Shown here: positions 55,212 to 62,460 of the stretch, in pieces
How the letters are laid out: the number at the start of each line of letters is the position of its first letter
How positions within the stretch are numbered: position 1 is the stretch's first letter
From: Ruditapes philippinarum
Lineage: Eukaryota
Length of the DNA: 64,000 nt
Assembly (NCBI RefSeq): GCF_026571515.1
Contig: NW_026863843.1
Span: 372,001-436,000 of the forward strand
Direction: 5' to 3'
Notes under the pieces: model-generated
Seen by the model: the letters and a program-made list of their open reading frames with translations, nothing else
Database searches by the model: none
Told to the model about the DNA's origin: nothing
Program-made: the position numbers and the translations under genes

Positions 55212-57356
55212 TATGAATCATAAGCAGATAAGGATGTCCTAAAAATAAAAAATAAACCAATGACATGAAATATAAACATTTTTAAGATCAAATTAACTGA
55301 AACATGTACATTGTACAGTTGTAATAGGGCAACTTGTCATATTCTGATACTTATTTATTTGGAAATAAAAATATCAGTGGCAAAGTTTGTGTCAGTGTTT
55401 TTACCAAAATTCTAAGTCTATGGATTCTCAAAATAACGTCTGCCTTATGATTTAATCGTTTTAATTGAGGTTAAGTACTTCATAATCAAAACACATGATA
55501 GGATTTTCTGCTATGGAATCTTTCTAACTTGCACCGTTTTTAGTTTTTGTTGTTTCTAATAGAGGAGAGTACCAGGAAATGTAAAAAATCACTTTAATTT
55601 TTAACCTGCATTTTGTTTGTAAAAAATCATCTTAATATGGAGTTCTATTTAACTTTGTAGCTAAATTCATGAAATAAAATTGAACTTTGCATTATAAGAA
55701 CGCTTGAGTTCCGGAAGATAAAAAGTGTGTTGTCATGAGAAGTAGAGTAGTATTCGGATGTACAGACACTTAGTCAAAGGAATGGATGGATCGAGCTTAA
55801 GCTTATGACTTCATCCTTATTGAGTGCACCCCTTTAAAAACTAATTCCTTTTCCATAGATCTCAACTCATGCACTATTGTTATCCAACAAACCATTGAAA
55901 TAATAATATGAAATTAGGCAAAGCCTATGAACGGGGAAGTCGTTAAAAAAATCCTTTCATTCTTTCCGTTTTAAAGCTGTCATTCGATATTACATACACC
56001 GCTTCCGTTTTTACTCGGAACACTCGACGATTATTACTAATCCGAAAAGTTGAGATTTGTTCCGTTATCGGAATACCCCGCCTATTATCATTGACATACA
56101 TTGTAAATGGCGGCGCCGGACTAGAACTGACACTGAAAATTTCATTGATAGGTAGGGTCAATCCGTATAAAGTCGGACGACGTATAAAGTCGGACAGATG
56201 TCAGAAAACCACGTTTTATAACACTAATTCAATCATAACCGACTCAAGAGGCTTACATTTAGTGATTCAAAGACCTTTAAATCATTAAATTACACAGTTG
56301 CATAATCTTTACACCAACACCGTTTACGTATACACATTAATGTGTGACGTAACACACATCCTTTTCACGACTACACTTTCTGTCATTTGGCGGGTCATTT
56401 GAATCATTTGGTGCGTTTTCAGTGTTTTTCATATTACTTACATCAGCGCTTAAATTTAAATGAACACTTCGAAACTATTAACATTAAAATTGATATTAAA
56501 ACGAAATTTTGAAATAAATATTTGGAAAATAAATATAAAATTAAAGAAAATTGAATTGTCCGAAGTTTAACTATCTCTTTTTGCATCTAGTTAAAAGTCG
56601 GACAGATGAAAGTGCAAAGTTCTGTCCTTAAGTGTAATATAAGGTTTTAGATTCGATAATGCTATTCAGATTACACTCCTTAATTTAAAAAGACAATCAT
56701 TGTCTGGATGAATATAAGATTATTAATTTGAGTATTAACTTTGATTTATTACATTTATTTTCACACACAATCATATAGATCTAGATCTAATTTTAACCTT
56801 AATGGCTTTATACAGGACAAACTTACAAATCTAGATCTATATGCATTTTATAAGTCTTTAAATTTGCAACATTTGGCCTACATTGAACCACCCATAGACA
56901 CTTGCGATTTTGGAGCTCAAAACGCCTTCAAAATCAAAATAAAATTCACATTTCAACGTCTATGAGATAAGATATAGATCTATATATTGTTATATATATT
57001 ACGTATTATTATAGACATTGAAATATTTTTTTCAAAACGGCTTTTAAGTTTTTAATATAGATCTATATATCATATAAGTATTCGTCCTGGGATTGACAAA
57101 TATATATTTATTTGGATTTAAAAGGCGTTTTGGAACTCCACACCCCAAGTGTCTGTAGAACCACCTTAAAACATTAAAGCCATTCGTACAAATTCATCAA
57201 GTAGATCTAAATGAACTATGAGTTTTAACTTTTAAGTCATGCGAACTTTTGCTAAGACAAGCTCATATAAATTGATATCGGGTTTTCATCAACTCTTATT
57301 AAATATAGATCTTAATTGTAAACTATTTTAAGACAATACAACTATTTTCTTAGGAA

Positions 57357-57743
57357 ATGAAGAAAGTCATTATCGAAAGTCTGTTTGCAGTTGGCATGCA
57401 TCATCATGGCCGTAGATCTCTAGAAGTTGGCGCTCAATACCGTGGAAAGCCTGAACCAGACAATAAATTTGACAAAAATGCTATCGCCATATATTCTCAT
57501 CCTAATGCTCTTTTGAGTGCTTATTTGCGCCGTAAAGACGCTAGACTCATTTCTGACTTTTGCAGAAATGGTTTGGTTGAAGGACCAATTGTAATAAAAC
57601 CAAAATTTGAGCCTGTTTGTCGGGCTCGTGTTGGCCCATCTCAACGTTGTAATGTAGGGTTCTTCACAAAGAATGAACATGTGAAGGACATTGAGAAAAT
57701 TTCAAACGAACATGCTATTTATGTCAGATTCCTGGATTGCTGA
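57357..57743 (+). CDS. Stand-alone HIRAN-domain protein (128 aa) inside the transposon
   Basis: AVGMHHHG...LEVGAQYRGKPEPDNKFDKNAIAIY...LSAYLRRKDARLIS matches the HIRAN pattern VG...EPxNxyDxNAIxV...GYl.r..A..l. ORF is intact and has acceptor TTTTCTTAG 3 nt upstream. Confidence 0.8.
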   Translation: MKKVIIESLFAVGMHHHGRRSLEVGAQYRGKPEPDNKFDKNAIAIYSHPNALLSAYLRRKDARLISDFCRNGLVEGPIVIKPKFEPVCRARVGPSQRCNVGFFTKNEHVKDIEKISNEHAIYVRFLDC

Positions 57744-58029
57744 TATATACAGCTTTATGTTAATGTCACATATTTGTTTCGTCATACTTTCTTGAGCGTC
57801 TGTTGCTTATACGATGTTTTATTGGTTTATGAAATAGATATAGAAATTCAGTGAAAAGTTTTGTTTTATTGTATACCTAAAAGGAAGCAAACTAATGAAC
57901 TTCCAGCTGTTCTTTAATATTTTTTTTGTTCCAATCCTATCCATCAAGCCTTTTTTGTTTATTACTGAAGTAAAAAAATATCCATATCAAACCCATATTG
58001 TACTCTACCAAGCCGTGTTTTGACTTGTA

Positions 58030-58198
58030 CTCGCTGTCGTCGTCGTCATCATCACATAATAATAATAATAATAATGATAAATATAATAATAATGTTGATA
58101 ATAATATGATAATAATCATAATCATCAATACCACCTATATCATCATCACATCATCATTGTCAGAACTACCACCACACTCACCATCATCATCATCATAA
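58030..58198. repeat. (AAT)/(CAT) low-complexity tract between the two transposon ORFs
   Basis: Direct reading of the sequence. Confidence 0.85.
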
Positions 58199-58224
58199 TT
58201 GCTTGTATCATTTGGCTTTCAGCT

Positions 58225-60244
58225 ATGGAAAAAAAACGTGGAAAGATCCTTCAATATAATCAACAAGACCTTGAAAATGCTGTGAATGCTGTAACTTCAG
58301 GGCAATCTATAAGACAGGCTTCAGCAAAATTCAACGTTCCTAGGAGCACCATTGGGGACCGGATATCTGGTCGCTTTGATATGAATAAACCTCTGGTTCA
58401 CGGAAGACCCCCTGCCATTCCAGCAGACATTGAAAACAAAGTTGTAGAGGCAGTAAAGACAGCAGCAAAACTGGGCGTTGGTTTGAGTAGAAAGCAAATT
58501 ATTGCCAGAACTAATGTTTTGTGTAAGCGTATCAAGTTGCAAACAGCATACCCTAACTTTAAGGCCGGTAAAGATTGGTGGGAAGGGGTTAAGCGAAATA
58601 ACAATAAGAAAACCCGAGAAGCTTTCAAATGTGCGCGCTAGAATGTTAAATCATGTTGTCGTAGAAAACTACTTCAATGACTTAGGAAAAATCATTCAAG
58701 ACCTTAATCTGAGTTCCATAAACATATGGAACTGTGATGAAACAGGTCTTAATTTTGAGCATTGTCCTGTAAACGTTATTGCTGAGCGCGGGACCACAGT
58801 TGTTAGTAAGACTAGTCAAAAGTCAAGCAATTTAACTATAATGGCATGTGTTAATGCTGCAGGAGATGCAATGCCCCCTTTAATTATAACTAAAGGTAAA
58901 ACAGTAAAATCTTTACATGGGTTTAAAACAATAGATGCTCCGAAAGATACCGTGTGGAGTTACCAAGAGAAAGGTTGGATCACCGACGAAATTGGTGAAA
59001 GGTGGTTTAACCAAGTCTTTATTAAGCAATGCGGACCCAAACGACCCCAGTTGCTAGTGTTTGATGACCATTCTTCTCACGAAACACTTGCTATTATTGA
59101 ACGAGCAATTGAAGAAAATATAATTCTGTTATCGCTCCCTCCACACACCACACACTACCTCCAGCCTTTGGATAGAAGTGTATTTGGCCCGTTTAAGAAA
59201 GCATATAATGAAAAATGTTCCGAGTTCATATCAGAGCACCCACTTCATGTGGTAAATAAACATTCATTTCCGTCACTTCTCACAAAAGCTTGGGACGATG
59301 CCTTCACGCAGAGCAACGTAAAAAGTGGGTTTGCCTCCTGTGGAATATGGCCTGTGAATAGGTTTGCTATTCCGAATGATGCCTTTATGCCAAGTTCTGT
59401 GACAGATGTCCCTCATGTTACACATACATTGGCAGGCTTTGATGCCACATCTACACCCACTGTTGGTACCTACAATGCTGAAGGTTGGTGTTATAAATAA
59501 GGTTTTCTTTTTCTAATATGTATAACTAAGTTTGACGGGTATTTTGCGGTTACTCGATACAATCGATGAAATATCTAGAAGTAGAACAAGAAATAGTTGT
59601 TAAGTGCTCGTAAAATTTATAGCCGATATAATATGAAATTACAAAATATATATAATGCAATATTATAGTAACACGTATCGCGTTAATGAACAATGCAAAC
59701 AATTTTATTTTGAAACACAGTTAAACATTAACATGATAATTTTCAAGTTTTATGCCGACTGTGTTATTAAGTCCACCATTTGTTTTCACCCAGGTGTTGA
59801 ACAATAATAGTATTTTTTTTTCGTTTTGCTATAGATTCATCGGAAGTTATGACTGCTGTACCGTTATCACCACAACTTGAGAATAGAGATGAAGAACCAT
59901 CACGTGCTGATGATGTACCTCTTCCCGTACTTGACCTATCTGATCCTGCGGTGTTACTGGAATTAATTTCAAGTGAAAATCTAATAATGGATCGTGTAGA
60001 TGATAATGCATTTAATGAGGTTTCAGTTGAAACCGCTCTTGATGTTGACAATAGTATAAGTGAAGTATTTCTGCCCCCAAAACTCGAAAGTAGAAAAGAA
60101 ACTAAAAACAATGTTGCAAAAAAAACGAGCCATACTATTTTGACGAGTGAGGAAATAGTTAAACAGAAGAGAGAAATCCAAAAAAGAAAAAATGAAAAAG
60201 AGACCAAAAAAGCTGCTAAGAGAATAAAAACAGAAAAAAATTAA
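58225..60244 (+). pseudogene. pogo/Fot1-like transposase (HTH_psq, CENP-B HTH, DDE_1), frameshifted near 58594; intron 59484-59834
   Basis: YNQQDLENAVNAV..SIRQASAKFNVPRSTI, then GKDWWEGVK / frameshift / EITIRKPE. Catalytic motifs WNCDETG, LLVFDDHSSH and HYLQPLD (35 aa between the second and third D). GAAG|GTTGGT...CTATAG|AT splices in frame to a basic C-terminus containing ILTSEE. Confidence 0.9.
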
Positions 60245-62460
60245 AATGCAGTGAAAAGAGATGTCCAAAGTTAAGAGTACAACCGGGATAAATGAAGAAC
60301 ATTAGAACTTGTGTTAAATTTTGTTTGTTTTCCTTGCAGTCAACCAATCATGACTCATATCAAATAATCCGTCGATAACTGTTATATCTTAAAGAAGATA
60401 TGAATATGTCCAAATTGTTCTGTTTTTTGTTTTAAGCAATTAAAATGTAACTTCAAAAAGGGTTGAAATATAATTTTACTAAGAGATAAGTTGGTTGTAA
60501 CGTTTAATTAATTCATTTTAAATAGCAAAAACAGAGTACTATAAGAGTAGCTTTTTTTTATAAAAAGTCACAGTCATTTATTAATTGTGCTATTTAGGAG
60601 AGTTGCGAATGTTAACATTTTGAATTACAACCTTGAAAATGAAGATATAGACAATCATATTGATTAGTATTTGTGCCCTGAAATTATTTCTCAATAACTG
60701 TCTGCTTTGTTCCCCACTTTTTTTAAAAATTCTTAATTTGTCCGACTTTTGACTACTCAAAATTGCATGTCCGACTTTCAACTAAAGTATGTCCGAATTT
60801 TCACTATTCTGTCCGAGTCATAGCGTTTTACGCCTATGTACATTTTCCTCCCATTTTCGGAGTACTTTTGACATTACGGTGACAGTGAATGCATGATTCG
60901 AAACTAAATATAGTATAATTAAAGGGAAGTAATACAAAAGATCCTAAACTCCATATTGTTAATCACAGTAATCTGGCAAGTTAGGGTAACTGAATTTTGT
61001 CCGACTTTATACGGATTGACCCTATAGAATTCTATATATTTTTTAATTGTTTTTTATTTGATTTTCTTTTAAATATTCACATGTAGTCTATAGCCGGGCA
61101 AGCCAAAGCCCGGACCCGCTTCGCGGGCCCGGTCTTTGACTTCCCCGTATGAAAAAGGCAAAGCCTCAAAGCGAGCTCAATTATTCTTTTAGTTTTACCA
61201 GGTACGTATATTAACGGTATCCGCAACTAGATTTTAGACCGTGATTGGTGTCGTGCCAGTTACGTGCGCATACGAAAAACATTAATCGATGGCGGAAGGC
61301 AACAATTTCAGTTCGTGAAAAAATATGTTAATTAAGCGCTAATTTATGGGCATCTGCACAAAATACTCAAAAAATAATGACAGGTTTGTTGTTGTTAATA
61401 CTTAATGAGGGTCCATCCGCCCTTTCGGGCACAAAATGCAGCTTTCGCTGTCGAGTACGGACCCAGGACATGTCACCAGTCATGCCCTTAAAGAGTTAAT
61501 TTTGAAACACAAAATGGTGATAATTTACCTCCATGCAATTTCCACGGAGTATAAGCCAAAGAGATAAATTTTGAGCCAAAAGTAGGTCACTGTACAGCGG
61601 TCAATGAGAACCTAAATGTACAGTAACCTGTGACAATAGGAAAGGTGTTTGGCCCTGAAAAGGGCTGTTGGTGCCAGCTATAGGCCTGCCTTACAAGCTG
61701 TCTATCTGTACTAGGGGCTCACATACCCTAGTACACCATCCTCGTCGTCTCAGCCTACTTTGTAGGGCCACTCCCCTTGGCATTAGTCAGGACATCGGCA
61801 GCTGGTCCGCAGAAGTGACGAAGTAGGATTCCGTAGTTAACGCCCACGGTTGAAGGCTACGTTAAAGTTGTCTACCAGCCAAGTTGTAAATCTTCTGCCG
61901 ATGCCCTGTGCCTTCTCAGCGACGTGCACGCTCCGAGGGGAAGTGAAAAGTAATGACAGGTTAGTCTTATTTCTTTGTTATGTATGTAAATTTTTACTAG
62001 ATCACGCTTTCATTGGCGTAAATCGGGTTGGAAATATTCCACTCTGGATGAATGAGATTTACAAAATGGCGGAAAGTTTGTTTGAAACGAGTGAACACGT
62101 ATAAAATCTGCAGAGACATCAGGCTTAAACCGCTCCAAGAAAACTGACTAAACTTGCACAAATCGGTTTAAAATAAATTCAAGTATGTCGTGAAGGTACT
62201 TTTAACACTCCCTTATCATCTGTTCTATTGTTTTTGTGGCATGGAATTTGAAAGAAAATGTTAAATTTTTGTGGTGCAAAATTAAATTCACGACCTATTT
62301 TAGCCGAAGCATCAGAGGTATTTAAAGACCTTTAAAATATAAATGAAAGCTGAAAAGTTAGTCACTACATCATAGTAAATGGTTTATGATATTATTTATA
62401 ATTTTCAGCCGAGTAATTTTGATGCTATGTCTTTTTGAAAATGGATGAATTTTCCCCCAT

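Follow-up and report, generated by a model that had tools for sequence, protein, structure and literature searches.

A pogo-superfamily DNA transposon of Ruditapes philippinarum with a stand-alone HIRAN gene that looks like a conserved accessory gene of bivalve elements

The sequence analysed here is a 64,000-nucleotide stretch of the Ruditapes philippinarum genome (assembly GCF_026571515.1, contig NW_026863843.1, positions 372,001 to 436,000), here named the window, whose own numbering is used for all positions. An element of 4868 bp occupies positions 56155-61022 of the window; it is one copy of a pogo-superfamily DNA transposon that this clam has in low copy number. Besides the transposase gene, the element contains a gene for a small stand-alone protein with a HIRAN domain. 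Comparisons among copies, families and species showed that, as far as sequence can tell, this gene has long belonged, under selection, to a whole group of pogo elements in bivalves and is not a passenger. Our favoured reading, to which we assign a probability of about 0.6, is that of a pogo family with a selected HIRAN accessory gene, whose protein would bind 3'-OH ends during transposition.

The small gene maps to an intact open reading frame (ORF) of 128 amino acids. The original prediction, made from the sequence without database searches, had regarded it as a stand-alone HIRAN, and structural comparison bore this out. An AlphaFold2 model, obtained with an alignment of paralogues as input, reached a predicted local distance difference test score (pLDDT) of 89.7 and a predicted template-modelling score (pTM) of 0.83, and showed an oligonucleotide-binding (OB)-like beta-barrel with two flanking helices, as in the HIRAN domain of HLTF. 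The predicted fold takes in the whole ORF, up to residue 127. With this model as the Foldseek query, the top ten rows shown were all HLTF HIRAN (E 5e-7, TM-score 0.68-0.74), and VIA-align placed DNA-bound HLTF HIRAN first (Z 14.6, root-mean-square deviation 2.4 A over 117 residues). Next came a bacterial stand-alone HIRAN (3k2y, Z 10.9), followed by unrelated folds at about Z 8, with Rad5 (6l8n, Z 7.4) among them. Nine of ten paralogues in the same genome matched the Pfam HIRAN family (PF08797; best E 8e-9), and many database homologues carry a precomputed PF08797 match. The identity of the small ORF as a genuine HIRAN domain, as read from the predicted structure, is solid. The fold, together with the paralogues and the signal of selection, rules out a chance ORF, and a recent capture of the host HLTF was rejected on the identity to HLTF HIRAN, which is only ~20%.

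Residues of the 3'-end pocket could be traced in the alignment with HLTF. The loop EPDNKFDKNAI, whose resemblance to the HLTF loop had been pointed out in the original prediction, aligned to DPNNPYDKNAI, with N36, F38 and D39 on N91, Y93 and D94, so that the Asp of the 3'-OH contact is kept. In HLTF, the 3'-OH is recognised by D94 and the two terminal bases are pinched between Y72 and Y93 (PMC5773155), and mutants of the R71E/Y72A/Y93A type lose 3'-end binding (PMC6511057). D39 and N36 were invariant in ten aligned paralogues, and the position of Y93 is occupied by F in the window protein and by Y, F, H or W in most homologues. Residues H15, H16 and H17 aligned on R71, Y72 and Y73 of HLTF. They belong to a GMHH[YWH]G motif that was found in ~160 of 226 homologues, and more distant homologues retain the second His. 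On this alignment, the ligand is likely, though not certain, to be identical to that of HLTF.

The 1.4 Gb genome of R. philippinarum was searched in six frames with the window protein. HIRAN ORFs were found at 35 places, many of them intact, belonging to six families with 28-46% identity. A pogo helix-turn-helix (HTH) or DDE_1 domain was found within 1.5 kb of HIRAN at 13 distinct loci (loci of the other families were viewed within +-1.5 kb of the HIRAN ORF), and it was co-oriented with HIRAN in 13/13. Two arrangements were found: HIRAN lies upstream of the transposase in families 1-3, including the window element, and ~1 kb downstream of the catalytic core, right after a Lys/Glu-rich tail, in families 5 and 6 and at locus L040.

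Family 1, that of the window element, has few copies, with 88-93% identity. Two of them carry both terminal inverted repeats (TIRs), namely the window element and C13970:67125-72768, which is 5644 bp long. The HIRAN ORF was kept in all four family-1 copies that span the region, being intact in the window, interrupted by one stop in C13970 and without its start in C5465. In families 5 and 6, the sequence common to the copies stops 615-680 bp past the HIRAN stop codon, at ...ACGT followed by TA, and the flanks differ from copy to copy, indicating that the ORF lies inside the elements of these two families. The family-5 end had 22 matches in the genome, versus none for the reversed control.

Family-5 ends were also seen as an inverted pair 2.76 kb apart at C14481:10434-13194, which fits a short derivative, and several family-5 copies (loci L052, L056, L057, L059 and L060) share only their HIRAN-proximal part with the transposase-bearing copies. 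Both appear to be non-autonomous derivatives, which would carry the HIRAN gene without a transposase.

Sequence divergence between families was high at synonymous sites (proportion of synonymous differences, pS, 0.70-0.85, which is saturated) and lower at non-synonymous sites (pN 0.2-0.49); for the pair L040/L044, a pN of 0.205 stood against a pS of 0.848. Saturation of the synonymous sites together with the low pN argues for purifying selection on HIRAN between families. The ratio of non-synonymous to synonymous substitution rates (dN/dS), which the original prediction had named as a check on the gene, was 0.2-0.36 between families where dS was estimable (~0.2 for L037/L039), and thus not near 1. 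Pairs within families mostly gave 0.06-0.4, with one pair near 1, a spread as expected from what would be a mix of changes in active lineages and after insertion.

Homologues of similar size were found in other bivalves. Word-indexed searches retrieved small proteins of 117-155 amino acids, some on megabase-sized contigs, from species including Mytilus galloprovincialis, Mactra antiquata and Dreissena polymorpha, and those of Mactra and Dreissena are stand-alone. A profile search against clusters at the 50% identity level gave 419 matches at E<=1e-3, of which at least 194 reached E<=1e-10; among the 150 clusters listed, most are 110-135 amino acids long. Gene models that join HIRAN to transposase parts were also found, namely KAJ8320112 and KAJ8305242 of Tegillarca granosa (HIRAN joined to HTH_psq), VDI43002 of M. 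galloprovincialis (the C-terminus of DDE_1 joined to HIRAN) and an ENA protein (HIRAN joined to DDE_1). The Tegillarca model truncates the end of the HIRAN fold, which is typical of forced gene predictions. Whether or not they represent real transcripts, the joined models show that other bivalve orders have both co-oriented arrangements as well.

In a maximum-likelihood tree, the downstream-type HIRANs formed one clade (99/99) with sequences of Ruditapes, Mytilus, Dreissena and Mactra, and the HIRANs of families 2-4 grouped with a Tegillarca sequence (97/92). Clades that span bivalve genera indicate that the pairing of HIRAN and transposase is old or that the elements have moved between bivalves. 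The concern that the window had recorded a one-off capture is answered by this pairing, found in several divergent clam families and in other bivalves and under purifying selection.

Other matches came from outside the bivalves or from mixed samples. A cnidarian cluster of HIRAN proteins was among the matches of a language-model look-alike search. No HIRAN relative was found in GTDB genome contigs, and no transposase was detectable on ten short metagenome contigs with HIRAN ORFs. The 6.1 kb contig JBEVXV010001169.1 (L071, labelled 'MAG: Sedimenticola sp.', that is, a metagenome-assembled genome or MAG) encodes an intronless pogo transposase of 572 amino acids, 61% identical to that of the clam; HIRAN was not present downstream of this gene, and the upstream sequence comprises just 536 nt. 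This contig is probably bivalve host DNA that was binned into a symbiont MAG. Two such 'Sedimenticola' proteins and one 'Thiodiazotropha' protein were among the matches.

The anatomy of the window element was resolved as follows (positions, strand, feature).

56153-56154, no strand: TA target-site duplication, left; TA stands immediately outside the TIR on both sides
56155-56178, forward: left TIR, 24 bp, 100% complementary to 60999-61022
56170-56604, forward: three copies of the AAGTCGGACA motif in the left subterminal region (56170, 56187, 56595), from a motif search of the window
56896-57154, no strand: nested high-copy repeat like a MITE (miniature inverted-repeat transposable element), ~260 bp, with imperfect inverted arms of 48 nt, from the inverted repeat and genome copies
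57341-57353, forward: splice-acceptor-like motif read from the sequence, a pyrimidine tract and TAG, 3 nt before the HIRAN ATG (AG at 57352-57353)
57357-57743, forward: stand-alone HIRAN-domain ORF, 128 amino acids, intact (ORF, Pfam, AlphaFold2 model and structural matches)
58023-58206, no strand: low-complexity, trinucleotide-rich spacer between both genes, seen in the sequence and treated as a repeat in contig mapping
58210-58222, forward: putative splice-acceptor-like motif …tttggctttcag, read from the sequence, 2 nt before the transposase ATG (AG at 58221-58222)
58225-58594, forward: transposase exon 1, N-terminal part with HTH_psq and a CENP-B/Tc5-type HTH (Pfam)
58594-58595, forward: break in the transposase, with 11 bases missing and the frame shifted (other contigs, ORF overlap, homologue P0193)
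58595-59483, forward: transposase exon 1, catalytic DDE_1 part, DD35D (Pfam; invariant D141 and D177)
59484-59834, forward: transposase intron, GT..AG, phase 1, 351 nt (RefSeq model P0192)
59835-60244, forward: transposase exon 2, an acidic part, then a Lys/Glu-rich C-terminal tail and the stop (ORF 59849-60244, within P0192)
60739-61007, reverse: four copies of the AAGTCGGACA motif in the right subterminal region (60739, 60768, 60790, 60998), from the same motif search
60999-61022, reverse: right TIR, 24 bp, in inverted-repeat pairing with the left TIR
61023-61024, no strand: TA target-site duplication, right, immediately outside the TIR

The stretches 56153-56178 and 60999-61024 form an inverted repeat in which 26/26 positions are complementary, which corresponds to TA plus the 24-bp TIR at each end. 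In the genome, the TIR 24-mer had nine matches with up to three mismatches, versus none for the reversed control, and marks the ends of other copies. Of the ten matches of AAGTCGGACA in the window, seven belong to the element ends, and those of one end are inverted relative to those of the other; 2.5 matches are expected over the whole 64-kb window. These subterminal copies are likely to be binding sites of the transposase.

Pfam searches detected HTH_psq (E 1e-7) and HTH_Tnp_Tc5 (E 2e-4, with a score of 21.7 bits against a cut-off of 22.2) in the ORF 58225-58641, and DDE_1 (E 6e-33) in the ORF 58502-59500. The transposase is represented by the RefSeq model LOC132723495 (P0192) of R. philippinarum, which is 100% identical to the window and reads ...NAE followed by DSSEV... 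where 59483 is joined to 59835. In an alignment of 34 homologues, D32, D141 and D177 of P0192 were invariant or nearly so, and the 35 residues between the last two give the spacing DD35D. The element therefore has the TA-flanked TIRs, the paired N-terminal HTH region (psq plus CENP-B/Tc5 type) and the DDE_1 domain with a D,D,D triad by which the pogo superfamily is recognised.

Several claims of the original prediction concern this anatomy. Its perfect 24-bp TIRs with flanking TA, enclosing a transposase and a co-oriented small ORF, its assignment to pogo and its DD35D triad all agree with these results. The label Fot1-like found no support, since the nearest named relatives are of the metazoan jerky, Tigger or pogo-KRAB type and not fungal Fot1; in molluscs they bear the names 'jerky homolog', 'pogo transposable element with KRAB domain' and 'CENP-B homolog'. 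The description as a two-gene element stands for HIRAN, whose ORF is intact, and needs correction for the transposase, which is spliced and is broken by an 11-base deletion. The two transposase ORFs of the window overlap out of frame. Behind 58594, 11 extra letters are present in contigs from two further runs of the species (X1 and X11), and a homologue (P0193, 76% identical) is continuous across the break. The deletion and the resulting frameshift indicate that the window copy is no longer autonomous; the family remains pogo, and this copy, which lacks an intact transposase reading frame, is defective. As the gap at 58594/58595 is missing from the contigs of these two runs, the break may be polymorphic, or specific to this copy or to the assembly.

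The order of signals around the HIRAN gene bears on its expression. In all six HIRAN families, a pyrimidine tract with CAG or TAG was found 0-19 nt ahead of a conserved ATG (MKK, MKN or MMK start), and at L040 an in-frame stop lies between the acceptor motif and the ATG. This pattern suggests a shared upstream leader and spliced mRNAs, from which HIRAN would be translated from its own start. An RNA-library contig annotated as 'mollusc metagenome', with 90-95% identity to the element, was seen to have no 57362-57707, which is nearly the whole HIRAN ORF. The ends of this gap are non-canonical (GA..AC), indicating a deletion and not an intron, and the variant stems, by its sequence, from a related copy or species in which this part was deleted.

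In the favoured reading, the HIRAN protein would be translated from a spliced transcript, starting at its own conserved ATG, because an acceptor motif lies directly in front of it. Its pocket would bind free 3'-OH ends of single-stranded DNA, and the protein could cap or mark the 3' ends of the element and of the donor break during transposition. Such capping would protect the ends, influence the repair of the donor break, or both, to the benefit of the element. Excision of the pogo/Tc1-mariner type gives both the excised element and the donor break short 3' overhangs with a free 3'-OH, and it is because excision leaves such ends that capping or marking is favoured as the mechanism.

The same pocket could instead serve the choice of target. 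HIRAN would then read 3' primer ends at forks or gaps and recruit transposition to them or time it to S phase, in analogy to TnsE, a reading that we hold to be rather unlikely. It draws on the binding of HLTF HIRAN to the nascent-strand 3' end at stalled forks (PMC5773155, PMC6511057) and on TnsE, which binds recessed 3' ends and sends Tn7 to replicating DNA (PMC5371812). The transposases of Drosophila pogo, Tigger and Lemi1 carry a PCNA-interacting protein (PIP) box that binds PCNA (PMC5371812). A canonical PIP box was found in 0/34 mollusc transposases of the clade to which the element belongs, and HIRAN is a possible other route to the primer terminus; it is the presence of PCNA binding in the classical elements and the lack of this box in the clade of the element that make targeting to forks attractive. 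However, the absence of the box comes from a pattern search in which some proteins are partial. A stronger form, in which HIRAN would replace the PCNA-binding motif as a dedicated cofactor, coupling excision or insertion to primer 3' termini at replication forks or gaps as the first eukaryotic counterpart of TnsE, is put forward tentatively and with more doubt than belief. If true, a fork-coupled HIRAN cofactor would add a new class to the accessory proteins of cut-and-paste transposons.

A different objection is that HIRAN may not be stand-alone at all, being an alternative exon that is spliced to the transposase (N-terminal if upstream, C-terminal if downstream), with the fusion as the active form. 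The acceptor motifs directly ahead of the ORF in all families, the joined gene models of Tegillarca and Mytilus and the decayed copy L055, in which the frame of the transposase tail continues into HIRAN, speak for a fusion. Nevertheless, we consider it unlikely, as the window ORF closes with a stop codon that no GT donor precedes and that lies 480 bp upstream of the transposase start, and the predicted fold spans the entire ORF. The ATG and the MKK start are conserved in both arrangements, the ATG of L040 is separated from its acceptor motif by the in-frame stop, and the loss of the end of the HIRAN fold in the Tegillarca model is what forced predictions tend to produce.

The protein could also act as a decoy against host defence, occupying the 3' ends of intermediates and thereby blocking host sensors or remodellers of 3' ends, such as those of the HLTF/Rad5 type. 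The structural proximity of the transposon protein to HLTF-type HIRAN (Z 14.6, versus 10.9 for the bacterial stand-alone protein) would fit a decoy, and HLTF restricts HIV-1 in a HIRAN-dependent manner (PMC6511057). Yet the argument is one of analogy, as the restriction concerns HIV-1 and not DNA transposons, and the pocket residues are unlike those of HLTF, with His-His for Arg-Tyr, so we rate it as quite improbable. Even less credit, to the point of near dismissal, is given to a passenger, i.e., a captured host or foreign HIRAN fragment without a role for the element. DNA transposons do capture host fragments, family 1 has a low copy number, and one RNA-library contig is a variant with the ORF deleted, but HIRAN occurs in six divergent families, in two arrangements and in several bivalve orders. 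Conservation of the protein in the face of saturated synonymous sites, and of the start codon, the acceptor motif and the pocket Asp, also speaks against a passenger.

Several results weigh against the favoured reading of an accessory gene for a 3'-end-binding protein. The window protein itself scored 21.6 bits (E 2e-4) against Pfam HIRAN, below the gathering score of 24.7. HIRAN was seen inside a TIR-to-TIR element for one family, and inside a one-sided boundary for two more. No GTRAG donor was found upstream of either window ORF and no leader exon was located; contigs of four runs mapped to the element showed no splice joints, although these contigs may be DNA. In the pocket, R71 and Y72 of HLTF are replaced by His-His, a pair shared by all ten aligned paralogues and by most of the wider family, and the Y93 position is Lys in 25/178 homologues, so that the ligand could be another than that of HLTF. 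Lying next to the 3'-OH pocket, the His-His pair may mean that the ligand has changed, or even that there is chemistry at the 3' end.

Among known systems, the element is closest to the pogo superfamily of the IS630-Tc1-mariner group (pogo, Tigger, Passer, Lemi), with which it shares the TA duplication, short TIRs, subterminal repeats, HTH_psq, the CENP-B-type HTH and DDE_1 with a DDD triad. It differs from them by the additional conserved HIRAN gene, the transposase intron and the lack of a canonical PIP box in its clade. The clam protein has the same fold as the HIRAN of HLTF/Rad5 (PF08797) and shares its NxxD..A loop, including the 3'-OH Asp, but it is a transposon-encoded stand-alone protein of ~125 amino acids without SNF2 or RING domains, with His-His for R71/Y72 and ~20% identity. 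Bacterial and phage stand-alone HIRANs, such as lp_0118 of Lactobacillus plantarum (PDB 3k2y, Z 10.9), are likewise small, single-domain proteins of the mobile or accessory genome. The clam HIRANs are nearer to HLTF than to these in sequence (E 4e-5 versus 7e-3) and also in structure, and they differ by an extra C-terminal helix and strand, by being eukaryotic and by the splice-acceptor motifs in front.

Animal Tc1/mariner/pogo elements are textbook one-gene transposons and are used as gene-transfer tools. In other groups, Helitrons encode RPA-like binders of single-stranded DNA, and PIF/Harbinger elements have a Myb-like ORF. The accessory ORFs of Helitrons, PIF/Harbinger and the ciliate TBE/Tec elements likewise provide a second protein beside the transposase, but none is a HIRAN and none has been reported for animal pogo elements. 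The TBE and Tec elements, which are related to Tc1/mariner, have three ORFs (PMC7325037). TnsE of Tn7 is a functional analogue and not a relative, as it too is an accessory protein encoded by a transposon and recognises recessed 3' ends of DNA (PMC5371812); it is bacterial and has an unrelated fold, and its role in target choice is proven, whereas that of the clam HIRAN is hypothesised.

Among 8.4 million papers and preprints, none was found that connects HIRAN with transposons of eukaryotes, a search that did not cover Repbase and Dfam, and HIRAN goes unmentioned in the recent pogo and Tc1/mariner surveys that were consulted or listed. The pogo lineage with HIRAN looks like a case of a previously undescribed conserved accessory gene. 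A selected second gene for a reader of 3' ends suggests that some lineages handle their DNA-end intermediates, or their access to replication forks, by themselves. The HIRAN module, known from the fork-reversal enzymes HLTF and Rad5 and from phages, would thereby have a third place of use, the mobile elements of eukaryotes. The system is directly testable for effects of 3'-end handling on excision, reintegration and donor-site repair, as the protein is small, the transposon is defined and D39 and H15/H16 offer clear mutants. Such elements may also account for small 'HIRAN domain-containing' hypothetical proteins in some invertebrate genome annotations.

Other observations concern the remaining parts of the element. 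The FLP and HxxLTS motifs are conserved in the C-terminal tail of the transposase homologues; in the tail encoded by 59835-60244, compared with P0196, P0200, L044 and L040, they read …FLP… and …H(R/T)(L/I)LTS.E…, followed by the Lys/Glu-rich tail. The families with downstream HIRAN have an additional tail motif, HPLVKAGLIP.DLV. These motifs may be involved in interactions or in nuclear localisation. Between the HIRAN stop and the transposase ATG, runs of TCG, TCA and ATA fill most of the spacer at 58023-58206.

The nested MITE-like repeat at 56896-57154 occupies part of the stretch from the left TIR to the HIRAN ORF. The repeat had dozens of matches in the genome (query positions 738-1005), in both orientations and with 74-82% identity, and contig depth peaks over it. 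It was found in the other family-1 copies too, indicating that it is older than their spread.

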